A stretch of DNA of 64,000 nt from Mytilus californianus (GCF_021869535.1 NW_026262581.1:80476001-80540000); one strand, 5' to 3'; positions 3,960 through 61,043 are shown, numbered from the stretch's first letter. Notes: a model not told the origin generated them from the letters alone. Made by a program: numbers and translations.

Positions 3960-4170
3960 CCAACGCCCTTATTTATGTTTAAATCAATAAACCAAACGCC
4001 AATATAACAGACTGCAACAAACGGCAACCGCTGAATTACTGGCTCCTGACTTGGAACAGGAACAGAAATAATGTGGCGGGTTTAGACATATTTGTAAGTA
4101 CTCAAACTTTCTCTTAACCTGGGACAATGGTTTAACTGCAAAACATAATAATGTAAAAATCAGTTGAAAA
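3960..4170 (-). mobile_element. Decayed short repeat carrying a degenerate twister-like core (4028-4130)
   Basis: Minus strand reads ...CCCGCCACATT...TTCCTGTTCCAAGTCAGGAGCC, preceded by a TGAGTACT(T)A palindrome remnant. Homologous to 28873-29463. Confidence 0.55.
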
Positions 4171-11320: not shown

Positions 11321-11779
11321 GTACTAACATTCTTACGTTATAAAATACGGAGTAAATCACGCTTTTCAGTTTGTTTTCCTGTACATTGATGTACCGTTGT
11401 CATGGACAGCATGTTTAGGCATAGATGTTATATTTTATAGGGAAATAAAATGTAAATTTGGACTGTTGTCGGCCCATCAAAATTTCGGAATCCTATGAAA
11501 CATCCAAGTTAAGTAATTATACAGAAATGATAAGGAAAACATCTAAAATCGTAGGTGTGGTAAATCGGGAAATTGTATCATGCTTAGGACTATGCAGAAC
11601 ACTCTGCAAATTTGTAAAATGAAAGAACATAATAGTTCATGATTGTTTTCCATTCTTATCAATATGTAGGAAAGATATCTTTTTAAACTATCAGTGTAAC
11701 AAGACTCTATTGCAATTCTCTTGGTGAACAATGAAAACAAAACAATATTTTATGCTGACAGATCGTTTTTGGTAAATAG

Positions 11780-12560
11780 ATATGAAAAGGAGATCTGGTA
11801 TGATTGCCAATGAGAAAACTCTCCATCTGAGTTCAAACGTGGGTGTACGCGACTATAGGTCAACAATGAGCAAAACCCATACCGTTATGAAACGCCCCGA
11901 CATGACAAAATATGAAAAAAATGATTCAAACGGGAAAATTGAAGACATGATGTATGGCAAAAAAAAATAAACGAAAAAAAAATATAGCATGCAGCAACTT
12001 ACGACCACTTAATTACGATCTCCTAACTTGGGAAAGGCAAATACAGAAAATGGCAGAGTTGAAAATGTGTGTGAGCACTCAACCCTTGAAGTTGCCCTAA
12101 ATTAGGATAGTAGTGTTTCAGCACAACATAAAAACAAGATGTAAAAATCAAGTAGAAATTGTTTGACTCTTCAGTTTGGCACGAACTACAAAATTCAACT
12201 AACATAAAGGCAAAAAACACAAAGTACCGGTCTAAGATTGATTGATTGATTGTTGGTGTTTTAACGCCACTTTTGGGATTATTTCGTGGCGGCCAGTTTT
12301 TATTGGTGGAGGAAGCCGGGGTGCCCGGAGAAAACCACCGACCTTCGATAGGAAAACTGACAATCCTATTCAGTTAAGATTGGAGTCGAGTGCACCCGCA
12401 CGAGAGGGGTTCGAACTCACAACCTCAGTGTTGACAGGCTAGTGATTACAGTAGTAGAACTACATAGACCACTTGGCCACCGAGGTCCCCACCGATCTAA
12501 GAGTACTCGCAGTTACTGAAAGCTATTTTTCAAAATCAATTACATGTACAACTAAAAGAT
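11780..12560 (-). mobile_element. Decayed twister-family non-autonomous element, interrupted by a SINE
   Basis: Family 3' end (AAGGAGATCTGGTATGATTGCCAATGAGA on +), degenerate CTCCTAACTTGGGAAAGGC core near 12020, and CGCAGTTACTGA at ~12508 after the SINE insertion. Confidence 0.6.
12238..12490 (-). mobile_element. tRNA-headed V-domain SINE (BivaV-like), full length with target site duplication
   Basis: Minus strand: A-box TGGCCAAGTGG, B-box GAGTTCGAACCC, V-like GGTTTTCTCCGGGCACCCCGGCTTCCTCC, (CAAT)n tail. 12-bp TSD ACCGGTCTAAGA (12226-12237) / ACCGATCTAAGA (12491-12502). Confidence 0.85.
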
Positions 12561-23615: not shown

Positions 23616-25145
23616 CATAAGGCTGCTAACAATATCATTATTGTTTGACGTAAATTTTACATTGAGGTTCTGAAAAAGGAAATCAAGAATTCACCCAACA
23701 TTCCAACTGACTCCATTTTCAGAAAATGACATCTGTAACAAACATAAACTTTTAGCTATCTCTTTACAAGCAAAACCAAATACATTGTACAATGAAAGTT
23801 CCAACTATGTACTGGCTTGCAAAGCTGCACAAAACTCCTTACAAATATAGATTTATTTCTTCTTCAATGTTCCACTACTAAACTATATATTCTACTTACT
23901 AGTACACTTGGTATAATCAAAAACCTGGTAATAAATTGTTCAAATAAGGCCTTTGAATATAGTGGAATTAATTACTTTTGGAGTGTCAAAAATTCGTTGG
24001 AAGTACATGTACTTGATAAATTGCATGCTTATATTGGTGATTTCGAATTTGTTCAAAGTTTTGATTTTTCTACCCTATATACCACTTTACCTCATAATCT
24101 TACTAAGAAAAAATTCACACACCTGATTAAATGTGCATTTAAAAAGTCAGAATGCGAATATATAATTATGTTCAAACTCTTTTAGGTCATTTTTAGTAAC
24201 AACAAACAAAAGAACTATGTCAATTGGACCTGTTTTGATACTATAACTGCCCTTGAATTTTTACTAGATAACATTTTTGTTCGCTATGGAGATTCCGTAT
24301 ATCGTCAAGTTATTGGAATTCCCATGGAGACTAACTGTGCACCACTTATTGCGGACCTGTTTCTGTATTGTTATGAGTTACAATTTATGACTAAAATCAG
24401 CAAAGACCCATCGAAACAACACCTGATTCCAAAATTTAATAACAATATTAGATATTTAGGTGATATATTGGCTCTCAATAATGACGACTTCAGTATGTAC
24501 ACTAAAAAGGTTTATCCTGCCTAACTGACCTTAAATAAAGCTAATACTAACAATGAACACTGCCCCTTCCTGGATCTTGATATCTATATCTTTAACGGGA
24601 AGCTTAATACCAAAATTTATGACAAAAGAGATGATTTTTCATTTCCTATTGTTAATTATCCATTTTTAGATGGTGACGTTCCCTTGTCACCATCTTATGG
24701 TGTTTATATATCTCAACTTGTTCGATTCGCTAGTGTATGTAACAACGTATTTGATTTTAACGAAGGAAATCTCATAACTGAAAAGTAATTACACCAGGGT
24801 TTTCGATATCACAAACTAGTCAAAACATTTACTAAATTTTATCATCGGTACAATGACATCATTCGTAAATATAAATCAACATGCAGACATCTTATACGTT
24901 CAGGTATTTCACATCCAATCTTTTATGGTAATATTCTTTACAAAGCACAAAAATGTCGGCATTCACCTCAAAAGCTAACCAAACCTTTAAACAGACTTAT
25001 TCGGAAGGGATATAGTTACGATACTGTTGTCAAGTCATTAAGAATTGCATATTTTGGTACATGTATTAATATTGATTCACTCATAGGGTCTTTGCATCGG
25101 AAATAAACACATTTATTCTAAAACCAGTTGTTGGCATGCTACGGG

Positions 25146-25234
25146 TTATGTTCTTCTCATATATTTTTTGATGGTATGATGCTAAACCCCTAACGGAATG
25201 GATTGTACTTGATTTTCATATGATTAAGACATAA
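25146..25234 (+). promoter_or_regulatory. SECIS-like element (form 2-like) in the 3' UTR of the Penelope-like element
   Basis: UGAU (25169-72) / UGAU (25210-13) quartet. Helix II GGUAUGAU/AUUGUACU. AAA at 25184-86, 11 nt after the quartet, followed by a CC/GG mini-stem. Helix I UCAUAU/AUAUGA plus UUAUGU/ACAUAA. The base before the core is U, not the usual A/G. Confidence 0.7.
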
Positions 25235-25426
25235 CACATAATCTTTCAATCAGTTTAATTGAGGTCTGGAGCTGGCATGTCAGTAACTGCTAGTAGTCCT
25301 TTGTTAATTTATGTATCATTGTCATTTTGCTTAGTTTCTTTTGTTACCTATTCTGAAATTGGACTCGGACTTCTTTTAAACTGAGTTTTACTGTGCGTAT
25401 CGCTGTGTGTTTCTTTATTCTACATT

Positions 25427-25518
25427 GGCTAGAGGTATAGGGGGAGGGTTGAGATCTCACAAAACATGTTTAACCCCGCTGCATTTTTGCGCCTGTCCCA
25501 AGTCAGGAGCCTCTGGCC
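25427..25518 (+). ncRNA. P5-type (circularly permuted) twister ribozyme fold; predicted cleavage U25471^A25472
   Basis: GGCUAGAGGU(P5)-AUAG-GGG(P2')-GAGGG-[palindromes]-U^AA-CCC(P2)-C-GC-U-GCAUUUUUGC(P3)-G-CCUG-UCCCAAGU-CAGG(P4)-A-GCCUCUGGCC(P5'). The core matches, position by position, the Oryza twister core as I recall it. Confidence 0.82.
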
Positions 25519-25759
25519 TTTGTTAGTCTTTTATGTTTTTTAATTTTAGTTCATTTATATGTTTTGGAGTTTAGTATGACGTACATTTTCACTGAACTAG
25601 TGCACATTTTTATTTAGGGGCCAGATGAGGACCACCTCCGGTGCGGGATTTTCTCGCTTCGTTGAAGACCCATCGGTTGCCTTTGGCTGTTATCTGCTCT
25701 TTGGCCGGGTTGTTGTCTCTTTGACATATTCCCCATTTCCATTTTCAATTTTACGACAG

Positions 25760-28872: not shown

Positions 28873-29463
28873 AAAAATCAAGAGATGTGGTATAATTGCC
28901 AATGAGACAACTATGATCCATCAAAGTTCAAATGAAGTGGATGTTAGCAAATATAGGCAATCGTGTGGCCTTCAACAATGAGAAAAACCCATACCGTATA
29001 ATCGGCTATAAAAGGCTCCGACATGAAAAAATATGATACAAAACAATTGAGAAAATTTATGGCCAAATTGTAACAAAACAATTTAAGAAAAACAAATACG
29101 GTAGACATGAACCAACGACAACCACTGAACTACAGGCTCCTGACTTGGGACAGGCACATATTAAAAGTGGCGGAAGTTAAAACTAGTTTGCCGGCGCCAA
29201 ACCTTCCCCCTAACCTGGGACAGTGGTGTAACAGTACAACATAAGAACAAACTATAAAAATCAGTTGAAAAAGACTTAACTCATCAGATCGATACAAAGC
29301 ACACAACATCTAACGAAAACCGCAACTGACGTGGCAGCCTATCTATGCATCTCACAACAAAAATGACAATAAGGAAAGATCTGAGCGCACTCGCAGTTAC
29401 TGACAGCTGTTTCAAAGCCAATAACAACTAATAAAAAGATAATGTATCTAAGACTAAAATATC
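28873..29463 (-). mobile_element. ~590-bp non-autonomous element with twister fold (29122-29226)
   Basis: Minus strand CCACTG..CAGGTT-A-G-GGG-GAAGG-TTTGGCGCCGGC-AAACTAGTT-T^AA-CTTCC-GCC-..G-CCTG-TCCCAAGT-CAGG-AGCCTG..CAGTGG. Family 3' end GTTGTCTCATTGGCAATTATACCACATCTC. Confidence 0.75.
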
Positions 29464-31993: not shown

Positions 31994-34900
31994 ATACCGA
32001 GGCTTTGAACAACATGAAGATTTGTAAATGTATAAATGAAAATTAAAGAGTGACGTATCTCCAGTTCCCGTTCATGATTATTCAAAATATACATATCTGC
32101 GTGTGGTTTTGTAATTTTAAATATATAAAGAGTAAACTGGAGAAATAATGGAACGCTCATATTTGTGTGTAAACTCATTCGCTGTCATTACATCCGGTAC
32201 CAATGTTGGGTGAAAGTAAACAGATACATGTATATGTACATATTAAAATGAAACTTTCGTCTCCCTACTGGTATTGAATGATTATGTTAATTTATCATAA
32301 TTAAGTTTCCCAAACGAAGTTCAGAGACATTTTTTTTTCAGTTTGTCTTCTCCTAGGCCTTCTTCTTGTTTATTGCACCTAACTAATTCACAGTTGTTTT
32401 GAAACTCTCCAGTTTGCTTAAGTATAGATGGAAGGAAGGTGAGCTTAATTTTGTGTTTTTCTTGAGGGTCTGTCAAGGTATACTTAAACATACAATCGGG
32501 GGAGGGAGGAGGGTATGTCAAACTAATAACTTAACGGTAAGGTCTTAAAAATAATTTAACTGTCGAAAGAGATGCCAAAATATAATTTTGTAATTTACTG
32601 CATTATTGGGATAAAAAGGGTGCAGTAATTTAATTTGGTAATTAACTCAAGAAATGGGTTTAGTTTGGGAAACCTTTTCTGTAAGCATCCTGACTCGTTA
32701 TTTGCTAGTCCGGAGAAACCAAGGTAGTAATTGTTTTAACATTAGACAAACTCCGTTTTGATTTTGGAGATTAAAATATATTTCATCATAGTTGTATGAG
32801 TTACTTCGCAAACATACAGCAATTCTTGTAATAAAACATGTTTGTTTTTTCAGTGAGCCCTACAAAATGTATACACATCTTGATATATTCATTGAATTGG
32901 TATAAAAATAAGGAGATGTTGTATAATTGCCAATAAGATAACTAAATTAAAATAACTCCTCCAAAGTTCAAATGAAGTGGATGTAAGCAATTAAAGGCAA
33001 CCGTGCGGCCTTCAACAGTGAGAAAAACCCATACCGTATAGTCGGCTATAAAAGGCTCCGACATGAAAAAAATATGAAACAATTCAATTGAGAATGGCCT
33101 AATTTATAACAAAACAAATATGACGGACATGATCCAACGACAACCACTGAACTACAGGCTCCTGGCTTGAGACAGGCACTTATAGAATGTGGCGGTGCTA
33201 AACTTGTTTGCTGGCGCCAAACCCTCCTCCTAGCCTGCGCAGTGGTGTAACAGTACAACATAAGAAAAACTATGAAAATCAGCTGAAAAGGGCTTAACAT
33301 GTACATGTATCTTGTGCAAAAGTCTATTTCACCTTCTCATAATCCTATGAAATTTTATAACAGCTAGCTTCCTCTCCTTCTATTCTCAAATCAATGGGAC
33401 TTTTATGGAGGAAAAAGTTTTAACGAAGTATCATAAGCTGAGTGCGCAGAGGTTTGTATCTTTTTGCAGTGCTATTGTCTGTACTGATTAAATCATTGCT
33501 GTATTGGTCTCTTTTAGATAGAAAGTAAAAAAATGATACAAAAAACAAAATTCGTTTCAACAATACAACTACATGATGATTATCCATCCAGACATAAATG
33601 CCTGCATATTTGAGATCAACAAAATTTAAGCAGTAAGCTTTTGTTATTTGAGTGATTTACGTTTTTTTTTTAATAAATATCCACACATAATGGATGATTA
33701 TTATAATTCATCATCGTTTGTTATACTTTCCATGTATGGGAAATGATTTTGTAATTATTGAATTATTTGTTGTTAAATGTCAAAAGTGAATGGTATTCTC
33801 TTATCAAACTGAAGGTTGGTTGTAAAGGCAATAAATAGTAAGTATATTTTTTATTATTTATTGCAGAACGTAAGGACTTTTTTTTTTATTCTACAATGGC
33901 ACCATATTAATATTTTGTGATTGTATATGTTGCTATGCAATATCTTATATATGTCCAACAAATGTGATATCCTTCAAAAGAAGTATGTATTGTTCATGCT
34001 AAGCCTATTTATTTTTGAAGCAGAGATCAAAAATATTGTAAATAATGTTTAACAAATGGGAAATGTATATTTGTTATATTACCCTTCATGATTAAATGTT
34101 TGAATTTGAATTCGGCAAATTATTTATTCAAACAAAAATTTGGCTTCAACAATACACATTTTTGGTACAGCCCTGGTAGTATAGTTATTAAAACAATTGA
34201 ATTGCAAATATCTAATGCTACGTCATTGACAAACTGAGTATTTCAATTTTGTATGTGTAATTTATGCTAGTTATAGTTCTTGAAAAATTGATATTTTCCT
34301 CACTCCATGCACCAATAGCAGTTTTCGTTTCTTTCGGTGCACCGCCAGTGATCTTGGTGAGGCTATTTCGTTTAGTTCTAATCTCAACATTTTATCTTTC
34401 CCGTCTTGTGAAATGTGCGTTATACTATGTCTGCCTGGACTAAGCTTAGCCACAAGAATACTGCTATCTTTTAACAACGCTATTCCATGTATATAGCCAA
34501 AACCATCAACTTTCAATGTAAATTTTCGTTTTCCACTATGTGTGTACGAATGCACCAAACATTTCTTTGTTTCAGCATAACTAATAGTTTCTGCATTTAT
34601 GTCAACTGGACCTTCGTCGTTGTGTTTCATCGATATTATATTAATACTATTATCGCTCCCAACTAAATATAATCCAGTTTTCTCACAAACTACTACCAAG
34701 AGACTGTCTTCATACGCGTTTAGACCGGATGCGTTACTAGGGAGAATAAGTTCATCAATTTGTTCCATGGAATTGATATCACGGACTTCTACTCGACGAT
34801 CATTCAACATTGATATAAAGAGCTTCGAATTTCCTAGTACAGCCACATCGAACGGTTCGAATGGCAAGGAAACTTCTTGAAATATTTGACCCTTGTCCTT

Positions 34901-37265: not shown

Positions 37266-38899
37266 TTTTAAAGGGAGACAACCAAATACGATTAGCCGAG
37301 GAATATTTTCGTAATGGTTAATTAAGATAAACTAATTAAGGAAAGAGTCCGTTAAAAGTTACACTGGTATGTCTTTTAAAGGTAAATCAACCACACAACA
37401 AAAAATACTGTATATTGGAATCCTTACGAAACATAATCTGATATATGGATATGATGTAATTTGTTTTGAACTAGCTTTCGGAAACTGCAATTACTTTTAG
37501 ATTGGTACTGTGTCTTTTGTCTTTATGTTAGTTGGGTTTAGAGGTAATCTGGTGATTGAAGCCATTTCCAAGTGTTTTTTTTTTTTCTCACAGTGTTTTC
37601 TTGGTTGTGTTGTTACGCCGCTATCCAAGGTAAAAAGGTGGAGCGCTCACACACATGTTTGTTATTATTGTTTATGCGCCTGTGCCATGTTAGGAGCCTG
37701 TAACTCTGCACTTGCTGTTTGGTTGCTGTCATTTTAAATTTAGTTTAATATGATAATATGAAGACTTATCTTGACAAGTTCCTTCTTGAATATAATAAAA
37801 GTTAGAACGTTGGTTTCCTAGTTGGAAAAGAAAGCAAACGAGACTCGTTTGCTTACTACATAATAAAAATTTACCCTCATCAGGAACGATCAAACCACAA
37901 AATTTGAAAGCCAATAATGTACCATAACTGAAAACGTGGGGAGCTGTACATATATCTATTTAATCAAAAGGAAATTAAAAAGATTCTCCAAATTCATTTA
38001 AGGTGAACTCTGTCTGAGAGAGTTGGAATGTTATAAATATTGTCAGTACCAAAGTAGATACTGAGCTAATGAGACCTCATGGACTAACAGTCGACCAGCA
38101 GCGTTATCGACCCAGTGTTATAAAACAATGAAAATAACACTTTATAAATGAGGTGTGTTCGAATCGTGAAGCTGCAAAATCGTAGTTTTTCATGCTTTTG
38201 CATATAAAAATAAAAAGATGGTGGTATGATTGACAGTGAGACAACTCTCAACCAGAGACCAAATGACGTAAAAGAAAGCAACTAAAGGTCTACGTACTAC
38301 TCAATCTTATATGAATTAAAAGACGGTAAAGACAAATCAATCCCGAATCTAGGTATTTTGTTTCACATCTTTAAAACATAACAGTTACTGTTAACATATC
38401 ATTTTTAGATATGAAAAAAAAATAGACGGAATTTTGAGAAATAACAATTTAAAGTGAACAAATTGCATCTTCTCGCCGCTTTTTACGTAAATTCTATACA
38501 TAATCTATGTTTATTTTATAAATTGTTATTTTGTTTGTTTCGCTTGAAGTTTAAATACAGCATATATCAAGTCCATAAAAGACGGTTACCATAACACCTT
38601 CAATGAGAGAAACCGTCTAGATTCTGAATCTTCCCCGATTCAAAATAACCAGATTTCTTAATAAGACGGGCATATGAAAATATTGCTTATAAAAAAATAA
38701 GTAGTTGATTGTGACTTTGATATGACTTATTTGTTTGTGTTCGTTAACGTTTAGTGGCAAATATTGCATGCCCATTCAGGACAAAAACTACAATAGGAAG
38801 ATTCTGCAAAGTTGTTTGACCGGAATAAAGGATGGGAATTTGGATTACAACTATGCAGTAAGAGTATGTTGAATATGGACAGACATTGTGCATTGCAAC

Positions 38900-57824: not shown

Positions 57825-58883
57825 TTATGATGATTTACATCCATCTACAGATGATTTTGAATATCTGGTTTTCGTCGATATATTTGATGCTTTCGAGAAC
57901 CTTCCTGAAAGTGGGCCTGTTTCTGCTTCGGTCTTTGAGGGAGAGCGTATTTCGGGTCTTTTGTTGATCTGTGTTGTCGGGCGACTGTTTATCATTGGAA
58001 GTGTATAATTATCTTTTTTGGTCTTTTGATCACTTGAAAGTTGACTACAAGGATCAAGCTTTGTTGTCAATATTCCTAAAGTTGTCAAATAAGATTCCTG
58101 ATTTTTTGGATGGATATATACAATATTTATATCTTTTAAAGAATGTATTAGTACTTTGATTTGTTTTCTTTCTTCAGTGGTGGACGTTTTCAAATTATGA
58201 AGTGTAATAAAAACTTGGCTATTTGAGCCAAATTCTTTTACAAAATCTAGCTCCTTTTTATGCTCGTTTACCTTTTCGATTAACCCCGAAACCTTATCCT
58301 CCTGCTTTTCAATGTTTGATGATTTCAAAAGATGCACAGATGACAGTTCTGATAGCAATGCATGCTCTAATGCTTCAAGACGATCAATAATGTTTTGTTT
58401 AATTTCAGCAATAGATTTCGTTATTTCGTCCTTTTGCTTATCTAGTCTTTTTAAATTTTCGGTTCGGTTCTGTGCTAATTTGTTTAATAATTGAATATCT
58501 TCATCCATATCTTTCGTCACGGTCTGTAACAAAGGCGATTGTTTGATTCCCTTTGCGACAGTATCTATTGACTGCATCCTATCGCACCCTCTATGTTTTT
58601 CCGTCATGCATGATCGGCAACACAGTGCATTATGATATGCACAGTACAGATCTAAAATTAGATCCGAATGCAAAGGACAATACTTTTGAGATGTTAAACT
58701 TGGGGATATCTCTGGCGGCATATCTTCTATTTTCTTTAGTGTATGTGCAAGAGTAATTTTATTGATTCGATGCGCATTATTACAATTCTGACATAATGAT
58801 TCAACACAGTCACAACACCAGCTAACTGCCTCTGCTGTATTGTTTTCTCTTTGGCAAGGTTCACAAAACGGAATTGAAGACAT
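57825..58883 (-). CDS. Double B-box / coiled-coil protein (RING-less TRIM-like) with S/T/P-rich tail and no propeller, 352 aa
   Basis: B-box1 CEPC..CCDC..LCQNC..AH..H; B-box2 CPLH..YCAYH..CCRSC..H..C; then coiled coil. Strong acceptor TTTTTTTTTTAG 6 nt upstream of the ATG. Confidence 0.88.
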   Translation of the reverse strand: MSSIPFCEPCQRENNTAEAVSWCCDCVESLCQNCNNAHRINKITLAHTLKKIEDMPPEISPSLTSQKYCPLHSDLILDLYCAYHNALCCRSCMTEKHRGCDRMQSIDTVAKGIKQSPLLQTVTKDMDEDIQLLNKLAQNRTENLKRLDKQKDEITKSIAEIKQNIIDRLEALEHALLSELSSVHLLKSSNIEKQEDKVSGLIEKVNEHKKELDFVKEFGSNSQVFITLHNLKTSTTEERKQIKVLIHSLKDINIVYIHPKNQESYLTTLGILTTKLDPCSQLSSDQKTKKDNYTLPMINSRPTTQINKRPEIRSPSKTEAETGPLSGRFSKASNISTKTRYSKSSVDGCKSS

Positions 58884-59969: not shown

Positions 59970-60331
59970 ATTGTATTGTTTATTTGTGTGTTTCTCTGTC
60001 CTGTATGTTCTTCCATTTATTTGTATTCTAGTCCTGTCATGTAATGTTGTCATTTTAGTGTTATATTTAACATTGCCATTAAAGCGGGAGGTTTGGCTAG
60101 TCACAAACCCAGGTTCAACCTACCACTTTTTCTTAAAATGTCCTGTACCAAGTCAGGAAAATGGCTATTGTTATCTTTTAGTTCGTTTCTGTGTGTGTTG
60201 CATTTTAGTGTGTCTTTGTTCTCCTCTTATATTTGATGTGTTTCCCTCAGTTTTAGTTTGTAACCCGGATTTGTTTTTTCTCAATCGATTTATGAATTTC
60301 GAACAGCGGTATACTACTGTTGCCTTTATTT
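59970..60331 (+). mobile_element. Third, strongly diverged twister-bearing non-autonomous family
   Basis: No obvious flank similarity to the other families, but it contains the complete twister architecture (60075-60165). Confidence 0.7.
60075..60165 (+). ncRNA. P5-type twister ribozyme fold with compensatory pseudoknot changes; predicted cleavage 60116^60117
   Basis: GCCAUU(P5)..GG-GAGGU-[UGGCUAGUCA][AACCCAGGUU]-C^AA-CC-U-AC-C..CCUG-UACCAAGU-CAGG-AA-AAUGGC. GAGGU pairs with loop ACC; AC pairs with loop GU. Confidence 0.72.
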
Positions 60332-60505: not shown

Positions 60506-61043
60506 TAAAATTGAGAATGGAAATGGGGAATGTGTCAAAGAGACAACAACCCGACCATAGAGCAAACAACAGCCGAAGGCCACCCATGGGTCTTCAATGC
60601 AGCGAGAAACTCCCGCACCCGGAGGCGTCCTTCAGCTGGCCCCCAAACAAATATGTATACTAGTTCAGTGATAATGGACGTCATACTAAACTCCAAATTA
60701 TACACAAGAAACTAAAATTAAAAATGATACAAGACTAACAAAGGCCAGAGGCTCCTGACTTGGGACAGGCGCAAAAATGCGGCGCGGTTAAACATGTTTT
60801 TTGAGATCTCAACCCTCCCCCTATACCTCTAGCCAATGTAGAAAAACAAACGTACAACAGTACGCACAGTAAAACTCAGTTTAAGAGAAGTCCGAGTCCG
60901 ATGTCAGAATAGGAAATGAAAGAAAATAAAGAAAATGACAATACTAGTATTACATAAATAACAACAGACTACTAGCAGTTACTGACATGCCAGCTCCAGG
61001 CCTCAATTAAACTGATTGAAAGATTATGTCTTCATCATATGAA
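60506..61043 (-). mobile_element. 3'-region-only copy of the Naiad-type element (truncated inside the SECIS 3' arm)
   Basis: Reverse complement of ~25215-25753 with high similarity. Confidence 0.9.
60743..60833 (-). ncRNA. P5-type twister ribozyme fold, second copy of the Naiad family; predicted cleavage 60790^60789
   Basis: Minus strand GGCUAGAGGU-AUA-GGG-GAGGG-UUGAGAUCUCAA-AA-AACAUGUU-U^AA-CCG-C-GC-C-GCAUUUUUGC-G-CCUG-UCCCAAGU-CAGG-A-GCCUCUGGCC; one P2 mismatch. Confidence 0.8.

Follow-up and report, generated by a model that had tools for sequence, protein, structure and literature searches.

We describe a type-P5 twister ribozyme motif in the 3′ tail of a Penelope-like retroelement, in which the linker at the position of helix P1 has, we think it fairly likely, been remade into two self-pairing segments. 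The motif lies in a 64,000-nucleotide stretch of the Mytilus californianus genome (GCF_021869535.1 NW_026262581.1:80476001-80540000), which is called the window below. The two P1 strands would no longer be complementary to each other; each would be complementary to itself, and each would pair with its twin on a second RNA, either another transcript or the second copy in a partial tandem. Pairing between two RNA copies by these self-complementary linkers is well supported by comparison of the copies, and we infer that the partner is RNA. As a natural twister with an intermolecular P1, the arrangement would be the first of its kind, and it offers a testable way into the unexplained part that ribozymes play in Penelope-like retrotransposition. 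Its diagnostic feature, central adjacent nucleotides that pass through all four Watson-Crick pairs, is a searchable computational signature of RNA homodimers.

Results

A type-P5 twister motif below the Rfam threshold

By its core, helices and permutation the motif is a type-P5 twister, without a cis P1 and with a score below the Rfam threshold. Its parts, all on the + strand, are as follows.

25427-25518, + strand: type-P5 twister motif (twister core, helices, permutation)
25427-25436, + strand: P5 5′ strand GGCUAGAGGU, 10 bp with 25509-25518 including two G-U (read directly)
Between the P5 5′ strand and the P2 3′ strand GGGG, + strand: AUA (read directly)
25440-25443, + strand: P2 3′ strand GGGG (RF02684 positions 1-9 span 25440-25448)
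25444-25448, + strand: conserved GAGGG (L1), whose GGG is the predicted T2 partner of CCC at 25497-25499
25449-25471, + strand: 23-nt linker at the P1 position, consisting of U, Pal1, CA and Pal2 (read directly)
25450-25459, + strand: Pal1, loop-less, TGAGATCTCA / UGAGAUCUCA, five mirror pairs
25460-25461, + strand: spacer CA (read directly)
25462-25471, + strand: Pal2, loop-less, AAACATGTTT / AAACAUGUUU, its last U lying 5′ of the scissile bond
25471-25473, + strand: predicted cleavage site U^AA (U25471^A25472), aligned to the UAA of RF02684
25474-25477, + strand: P2 5′ strand CCCC (RF02684 alignment)
Directly after CCCC, within 25474-25507, + strand: T1 GC (RF02684 alignment)
25480-25491, + strand: P3 hairpin (RF02684 alignment)
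Within 25474-25507, + strand: P4 CCUG/CAGG closing the loop UCCCAAGU (RF02684 alignment)
25509-25518, + strand: P5 3′ strand GCCUCUGGCC, preceded by a single A (complement of 25427-25436)

At Rfam gathering scores the window gave no match. Bit scores were 23.2, 20.6 and 20.2, against gathering scores of 37.6 (RF02684) and 67.2 (RF03160); all twister copies score 20-23 bits, below the 37.6 of RF02684, and the twister is visible only by region-restricted E-value searches. In such a search Twister-P5 (RF02684) aligned over model positions 1-58, on both flanks of the linker and with the P1 part skipped (23.2 bits), and the twister of a related retroelement (L097) likewise aligned on both sides of its linker with the P1 part skipped. 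P5 is also present in the predicted MFE fold. The conserved loop nucleotides U^AA, GAGGG and L4 GUCCCAAG are found at 25471-25473, 25444-25448 and 25495-25502, respectively, and are nearly invariant across 27 copies. In the same 27 copies, pairing amounts to 85% in P2, 89% in P3 and 98% in P4, and P3 and P4 each have three pairs with both sides changed. The T2-complementary bases of the window copy are 25446-25448 with 25497-25499, in an alignment register that shifts between families.

Two loop-less palindromes at the position of P1

The original prediction held that the bases between GAGGG and U^AA cannot form a normal P1, and both direct reading and the skipping of the P1 part by the model bear this out. 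The linker ends are mismatched (U-U, U-U, G-G); there is no cis P1 because the first and last bases of the linker cannot pair. Linker length is 21-23 nt versus 20 in the model, which is the size of a normal P1 hairpin, and Pal1 begins one or two U after GAGGG, the usual start of the P1 5′ strand. Two other readings of the linker were rejected. The sole alternative register for a cis P1, GGGUUGAG with UUUAACCC, would bury the cleavage site and T2, and we regard it as a competing inactive fold. If Pal1 were the true P1, the cut would fall after Pal1; UAA-CCCC-GC aligns to the model immediately after Pal2.

The prediction had also described two adjacent palindromes with a perfect 12-nt form at 60801-60812, and its coordinates and sequences are correct. 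That 12-nt form, TTGAGATCTCAA, is imperfect in the window copy at 25427-25518 (T...C) and perfect at 60801-60812. Families A, B and E have a palindromic stretch (AACNNGUU) at positions -9 to -2, upstream of the cut; U-1 falls within the palindrome, on its border or beyond it. The two-palindrome score of the window linker has p=0.0015 in 2000 composition-preserving shuffles, and other intact families have two loop-less palindromes totaling 10-11 bp, with p of 0-0.01 in shuffles.

Copies and families

We collected 48 copies from the window, from metagenome host contigs and from eight related retroelements. BLAST and nhmmer recovered about 10 copies in the window, in at least five families and several of them decayed; those beyond the motif at 25427-25518 include the following.

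60740-60831, - strand: second copy of the family of 25427-25518, with a perfect 12-nt Pal1 at 60801-60812 and Pal2 at 60790-60799
29110-29232, - strand: twister of SINE-like family B; Pal1 TTGGCGCCGG / UUGGCGCCGG at 29200-29191, Pal2 AAACTAGTTT / AAACUAGUUU at 29189-29180
33133-33251, - strand: decayed family B copy in which UAG replaces UAA (GUCUCAAG); Pal1 TTGGCGCCAG / UUGGCGCCAG at 33220-33211
4016-4136, - strand: decayed copy; Pal1 TGAGTACTTA / UGAGUACUUA at 4104-4095
60058-60189, + strand: diverged family; Pal1 TGGCTAGTCA / UGGCUAGUCA at 60094-60103, Pal2 AACCCAGGTT / AACCCAGGUU at 60106-60115
37612-37721, + strand: decayed copy; Pal1 GAGCGCTC / GAGCGCUC at 37641-37648
11994-12116, - strand: decayed copy; Pal1 UGAGUGCUCA at 12081-12072, with CpG changed to TpG

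The second copy of the first family is 88% identical (61029-60506 versus 25236-25753), and every palindrome variant named in the original prediction was located in the window. Metagenome contigs were scanned with an 18-mer from P4/L4, a query blind to the linker; among 88 loci, about 20 are the same element on apparent mollusc host contigs. Gutless-worm contigs among the 88 loci carry an unrelated type-P1 twister. In genome and viral contig sets, the same 18-mer gave only unrelated bacterial or viral matches and one contaminated MAG contig.

Pal1 occurs as GAGAUCUC, GAGCGCUC, GAGUACUU, GGGAUCCC, GGCGCC and GGGCCC, and further as AUGGCCAU, AGGUACCU, AGGCGCCU, AGGAUCCU, UGGUACCA and GGCUAGUC; Pal2 occurs as AAACAUGUUU, AAACUAGUUU, AAACCGGUUU, AAAUGCAUUU, UAGCAUGCUA and AACCCAGGUU. 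Some forms occur in elements with and without an ORF: GGGAUCCC is found both in the ORF-linked L097 and in the SINE-like copies L033, L041 and L055, and GGCGCC both in the ORF-linked L103/L105 and in window family B. Four copies (L074, L035, L041, L098) have imperfect palindromes despite a good core, and the truncated copy L055 starts at the cleavage site.

The palindromes covary as strongly as P3 and P4

That palindromic character is kept while the sequence changes was part of the original prediction, and covariation over the copies upholds it. Across ten mirror pairs in 32 distinct linkers, 87.3% of cells are paired versus 71.5% after shuffling (reached in 0 of 500 shuffles), and 47 cells are changed on both sides versus 15.7 in shuffles of these 32 linkers. 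The covariation score is 0.406, compared with 0.143 for shuffled linkers and 0.07-0.09 when the partners are slid by 1-3 columns. Pal1 is 89-92% paired across copies, with four of its five pairs changed on both sides; in an alignment also holding P3 and P4, Pal2 is 92% paired, with three pairs changed on both sides. The palindromes thus covary as strongly as these two accepted stems.

Decayed copies lose their palindromes. Because dead copies lose the symmetry and no repair acts in place, symmetry is kept only in propagating lineages. Among non-Watson-Crick cells, the 17 best-kept linkers have 10 G-U versus 1 A-C, several of the G-U cells being phylogenetically linked, and the decayed copies have 6 G-U versus 8 A-C. 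The excess of G-U over A-C points to pairing as RNA of the twister strand rather than as DNA. Core conservation set against palindrome integrity was rejected as support, the relation being weak (Spearman 0.37, p=0.015) and confounded by lineage-specific compensated core changes.

These patterns bear on whether the palindromes could be a DNA-level or copying by-product without RNA function, left for example by RT template switching or quasi-palindrome correction. They are perfect DNA palindromes of the restriction-site type, and the block changes of Pal1 between nearly identical tails (described in the next section) could be produced by template-switch module exchange. However, the symmetry is lost in dead copies, where nothing corrects it in place; on the twister strand G-U is tolerated and A-C hardly (10 versus 1); the palindromes sit exactly at the two P1 strand positions, with covariation equal to that of P3 and P4; and a fold-back cannot copy through a loop-less center. 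We regard a by-product as quite improbable.

Probable pairing between two RNA copies

In each palindrome the innermost mirror pair is made of neighboring nucleotides, and the pair outside it leaves just two between its partners; a single strand can form neither. The innermost pair of Pal1 is AU 12-14 times, CG 5, UA 4 and GC 2-3 times, and that of Pal2 is AU 14 times, CG 5, UA 3 and GC once; a second alignment gives a like picture for both. Since adjacent central nucleotides take all four Watson-Crick types, the pairing must be intermolecular. What selection has preserved is therefore the ability of each segment to pair with its like on a second copy. This covariation is what sustains the earlier proposal that self-complementary linkers let two copies pair, and the linker has one of the features of dimer-dependent ribozymes, a helix that is unstable in cis yet self-complementary.

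The same nucleotides weigh on a monomeric three-way junction, in which both palindromes would fold back as small hairpins, Pal2 serving as a P1 of 3 bp capped by a tetraloop. Such hairpins would form the outer pairs of both palindromes, and a hairpin would also suit the odd-length Pal1 of one copy, UUGG-ACA-CCAA (L033:603-639). Yet the two innermost pairs would then fall in the loops, and these nucleotides covary through all four Watson-Crick types; moreover, the linkers alone reach only 0 to -1.7 kcal/mol (the window linker has an MFE of 0.0), so we hold a junction of this kind to be very improbable.

For pairing between two copies, the calculated self-duplexes come to -14 to -20 kcal/mol for Pal1 and -7 to -12.5 kcal/mol for Pal2 (-15.4 and -8.8 kcal/mol, respectively, in the window). 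For a 90-nt RNA (25429-25518), the ensemble net dimerization energy is only about -9 kcal/mol, counting the Pal1 duplex alone because RNAcofold represents one palindrome duplex at a time, as the Pal1 and Pal2 pairs cross. With a net value of this size, tandem copies or proteins may be required for two RNAs to pair in trans at the concentrations found in cells.

Predicted palindrome pairing is family-specific: Pal1 homodimers average -16.5 kcal/mol and between-family heterodimers -5.8 kcal/mol, in a table of which two Pal1 entries (C*, F*) are idealized perfect forms, affecting two rows. Tails that differ at 1.2-2% of about 726 nt can have Pal1 forms that differ at four of eight positions (AUGGCCAU versus AGGUACCU), with all changes mirror-symmetric and Pal2 unchanged. 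Two processes could account for such switching of Pal1: diversifying selection that acts rapidly on a site of self-recognition, or template switching that exchanges the module.

A dimeric protein, such as the element's own RT/EN, is another conceivable partner for the palindromes. Symmetric sites suit homodimeric binders, and a tail common to autonomous and SINE-like elements is what one would see in an RT recognition module. There are, however, at least 11 Pal1 variants, several of them in one protein family at 97-99% tail identity. A sequence-specific protein is unlikely because the sequence is free to change while the symmetry is kept, and we consider protein-binding sites highly improbable.

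The host is probably a Naiad-type Penelope-like element

Upstream of the twister lies the following feature.

24186-25106, + strand: decayed C-terminal part of a Penelope-like RT ORF, with three in-frame TAG/TAA stops

The twister was predicted to sit in a 3′ UTR, and the spacing between ORF and twister in the window and at related loci agrees with a place in the 3′ UTR of a retroelement. In the window it stands 326 nt past the stop codon of the decayed RT-like ORF, which is 85-93% identical to ORFs in L068, L010, L049 and L081 that lie at an equal distance from their twisters. In L068 the ORF spans 807 codons, one of them a TGA in frame (L068:2061-2063), and L049 has a matching split into 326+435 aa. 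A protein search returned 4376 relatives, of which nine loci were fetched; eight of the nine (L097-L103 and L105, at 52-76% protein identity) have a twister of like build 260-390 nt after the stop. Between stop and twister there is a SECIS, with SECIS_1 scores of 37.4 bits in L099 (gathering score 35), 30.9 in L068 and 28.8 in L097, and a weak match at 25158-25222 in the window.

The element's tail extends about 300 nt beyond the twister and occurs in partial tandems: L100 has a tandem duplication of a 746-nt tail, and L099 and L103 have several tails. The tail is common to autonomous and SINE-like elements, and the SINE-like elements derive from the 3′ tail of the Penelope-like element.

In a protein atlas, the neighbors of the ORF by language model and structure are RT/HTH_animal clusters, some with GIY-YIG, and the ORF translation contains a YLDD motif and a CNC tripeptide. 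Pfam gave no match on the ORF pieces, and no GIY-YIG was detected in L068:1083-2060, where the element's 5′ part may be absent from the contig. No hammerhead was found in the window at the Rfam gathering score. Naiad elements, described from clams as selenoprotein-coding PLEs without hammerhead ribozymes and marked by an N-terminal GIY-YIG endonuclease and a CxC linker (Craig et al. 2021, PMC8557442), dominate bivalve genomes (PMC8557442). The present elements have the in-frame UGA with a 3′ UTR SECIS, and partial tandems as pseudo-LTRs without a canonical hammerhead. The host is probably, judging from these sequence traits, a Penelope-like, Naiad-type, selenoprotein-coding element; Naiad membership is only probable because the N-terminal endonuclease was not found.

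Does cleavage depend on the dimer?

In RNA reads of a related organism, depth was even across 25471/25472 with no pile-up of read ends, at a threshold of one fifth of local depth, in a library that was not end-specific and with reads over the site coming mostly from many diverged copies. This absence of read ends argues weakly against efficient cleavage. Among the linker differences listed for related copies in these reads are C>T at 25460, in the spacer, and the absence of one A from the spacer run.

In nested folds of the monomer, computed with pseudoknots ignored, a competing helix of GGGUUGAG with UUUAACCC buries UAA; it is 4-5 kcal/mol better than the native nested helices with T1/T2 uncounted, and this varies between families. 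Occupancy of Pal1 and Pal2 would disfavor the competing helix. On the other side, the absence of P1 leaves the cleavage rate of twisters close to that of the wild type (PMC5408937), and in a test of more than a thousand natural twisters these proved 'essentially impervious' to P1 imperfections (PMC11662667). P1 being dispensable for catalysis, the monomer may cut well without pairing.

The dimer reading in its strict form would have the monomeric twister inactive and cutting only as a pair, so that a single-copy mRNA or circular monomer would be spared and tandem or multimeric transcripts processed. Several observations lean that way. The dimer contact is well supported, the tails occur in partial tandems, and the host is Penelope-like, a kind of element in which canonical hammerheads with a palindromic stem III cleave as dimers, as relayed by PMC6765202. 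The twister also lies between the ORF and the last ~300 nt, where free cleavage would sever the ORF from the 3′ end; the competing monomer helix buries UAA; and the even read depth is compatible with little monomer cleavage. Set against these are the near wild-type activity of P1-less twisters and the tolerance of natural ones for P1 defects (PMC5408937, PMC11662667), and a competing-helix advantage of only 4-5 kcal/mol before T1/T2 that is not uniform across families. Moreover, Pal2 pairing through U-1 could hinder the extruded U needed for in-line attack. We find the strict form unlikely.

Discussion

Dimer geometry and proposed working

In the dimer that we favor, the Pal2 duplex would serve as a P1 made in trans: its helix would abut the scissile U^A in each of the two ribozymes and stand at P1's place with a ribozyme core at each end. 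The Pal1 duplex, stronger and family-specific, would be the main contact for dimerization and recognition. The Pal1-Pal1′ and Pal2-Pal2′ pairings cross in sequence order, and one continuous helix is impossible; since the two palindromes do not fit one continuous duplex, we offer the geometry of the dimer as a model only. To close symmetrically, the dimer would have to place two helices side by side, each about one turn long, with crossovers at both cores; the alternatives would be one contact at a time, or chains. One crystal form of the Oryza twister contained intermolecular dimers (PMC5408937), which makes strand exchange around P1 physically possible.

The dimer could serve more than one purpose. 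That pairing gates or promotes cleavage is possible, though we lean against it. About as likely as gating is that the RNA pair serves retrotransposition itself, by supplying two templates or through tandem or inverted insertions. A joint reading would combine these: a family-specific dimerization site inside a ribozyme, retrotransposition by an RNA pair, Pal1 as a barcode, hitch-hiking by SINEs, and cleavage gated by the same contact. We offer this combination only tentatively, as rather doubtful when taken whole. If it were true, the dimerization site would play in Naiad elements the part that the dimeric hammerhead has in other Penelope-like elements, and a need for an RNA pair in retrotransposition, with two templates at the target, would explain tandem and inverted insertions. 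Pal1 would then be a fast-evolving barcode by which an element pairs with its own kind only, and SINE-like families that are not autonomous could hitch-hike by copying it.

Comparison with known systems

The literature that we searched reports no twister in Penelope-like elements and no dimeric twister, and the Naiad paper (PMC8557442) makes no mention of twisters. Naiad elements are reported to be without the ribozyme that marks other PLEs (PMC8557442); the probable Naiad copies described here carry a twister instead. It may have been missed because its score falls below the Rfam threshold.

The closest ribozyme by structure is the type-P5 twister itself (Roth et al. 2014; RF02684). The motif has the same order, P5-P2-GAGGG-[P1]-U^AA-P2-T1-P3-P4(L4 UCCCAAG)-P5, the same conserved L1/L4 nucleotides, covarying P2/P3/P4 and a normal linker length; it differs in having no cis P1, in its sub-threshold scores and in its Penelope-like host. 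With the mini-twister without P1 (Kosutic et al. 2015, as relayed by PMC5408937) it has in common a twister core with P1 unpaired. The mini-twister, however, is an engineered deletion, whereas the motif described here retains both P1 strands in full, which selection would have reshaped to be self-complementary.

The twisters known from retrotransposons are of type P1 and lie at the 5′ ends of RTE-type elements (PMC8501958, PMC7761336). Among them, Perere-3/RTE of Schistosoma mansoni has 5′-end type-P1 twister variants whose P1 5′ strand comes from the target-site duplication (Liu et al. 2021, PMC8501958). The present motif resembles these in being retrotransposon-borne with an unconventional P1; unlike it, they are type-P1, belong to LINE-type elements and have no palindromes.

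A second copy completes an unstable helix in the double hammerheads of avocado sunblotch viroid and newt satellite RNA as well (Forster et al. 1988, as relayed by PMC6765202), and the same logic of multimeric RNA would spare monomers. Those are a different ribozyme in a different replicon, and their case was shown experimentally.

Retroviral dimerization initiation sites and the Ty1 PAL are short palindromes that vary by lineage and stay self-complementary, so that like pairs with like. A stable hairpin of the 5′ leader presents the retroviral sites in its loop. The palindromes described here differ from them in having no enclosing stem, in lying in the 3′ tail and in being inside a ribozyme.

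The nearest parallel is the minimal hammerhead of Penelope elements, which cleaves as a dimer (Cervera & de la Pena 2014; Lunse, Weinberg & Breaker 2017; both as relayed by PMC6765202). The original prediction drew this analogy, and it fits, as the host is itself Penelope-like. In both, a self-cleaving ribozyme lies in the terminal repeat region of a PLE whose elements occur in tandem, and one helix has become a palindromic segment that is unstable in cis and would pair between copies. The hammerhead has one short stem III with a palindromic loop, whereas the twister here has two adjacent palindromes; and the hammerhead's stem III is needed whereas the twister's P1 is dispensable. With its twister core, the motif relates to the dimeric hammerheads by analogy. 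Hammerhead and twister, ribozyme classes with no relation to each other, would thus each have turned one helix self-pairing in one kind of retroelement, which points to the RNA pair, and not the cut alone, as the selected property.

Variation and truncation at the twister palindromes

Across the compared retroelement tails (11701-12446 in the coordinates of L101), tails of 98-99% identity carry different perfect octamers as Pal1, the first of the two adjacent palindromes at the P1 position of the twister (L100:12481-12517 versus L100:13326-13362, L103 and L101). The changes affect 4 of 8 positions and are symmetric, and Pal2, which ends at the predicted cleavage site, is unchanged among these tails. 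Barcode-like turnover or module exchange could be the cause.

The border between Pal1 and Pal2 is also the exact 5' start of two 5'-truncated copies (AAACATGTTT... and AACATGTTT...), and one such copy (AACTTCTGCC...) starts 0-4 nt from the predicted cleavage site.

L061:~1555, 5'-truncated copy starting at the Pal1/Pal2 border
L021:~767 (-), 5'-truncated copy starting at the Pal1/Pal2 border
L055:~1340 (-), 5'-truncated copy starting near the predicted cleavage site

These three boundaries, which we regard as anecdotal, are of the type expected if reverse transcriptase stops at a stable duplex or if cleaved RNA is copied.

Neighboring repeats and other ribozyme motifs

At window 25688-25750, the retroelement tail is adjoined by a different, more abundant repeat: read depth rises ~3-fold across this interval, and 289 loose ends lie at 25688, where many reads diverge upstream. 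Elsewhere in the window, a 352-aa ORF at 57825-58883 (-) matches the B-box zinc finger (PF00643, E=2.6e-07); it probably represents a fragment of a TRIM-like gene of the host and bears no relation to the twister palindromes.

In copies of the SINE-like family B, whose twister tail probably derives from the retroelement, the sequence ~80 nt 5' of the twister includes CTGATGAG, which corresponds to the initial half of the hammerhead core.

Window 29287-29280 (-), hammerhead half-core
Window 19659-19652 (-), hammerhead half-core

No matching GAAA half was found near these family B half-cores in the window. Hammerhead half-cores have been mentioned for Naiad 3' UTRs (Craig et al. 2021, PMC8557442).

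A separate type-P1 twister (U^AACCAAGCC ... CCUGUCCCAAGCCAGG ... GGGAGGG) recurs in annelid host contigs of gutless-worm metagenomes (L001, L007, L013, L015-L017, L022, L029 and others), at the apparent 5' ends of a repeated element. Truncated twisters have been noted as markers of RTE-type retrotransposon 5' ends (PMC7761336), and this position agrees with that. Two records labeled as bacterial probably reflect host contamination of metagenomic bins by the animal retroelement: a Bacteriovoracaceae MAG contig holds a decayed twister copy (L089:586-723), and an RT homologue occurs as protein P0117 under the name Candidatus Thiodiazotropha MAG.

Probable ORF recoding and SECIS element

The retroelement ORF at L068:1083-3506 contains a single in-frame TGA (2061-2063; translation context IIIV*RKFY), and the resulting 326+435 aa split is shared with L049. 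A SECIS element lies 3' of the ORF stop and 5' of the twister in three loci, with a weak match in the window copy.

L099:3143-3210, SECIS match, 37.4 bits (above the gathering score)
L068:3562-3626, SECIS match, 30.9 bits
L097:2563-2630, SECIS match, 28.8 bits
Window 25158-25222, SECIS match, 20.6 bits

The combination of in-frame TGA and SECIS element is consistent with the selenocysteine-coding Naiads of clams.
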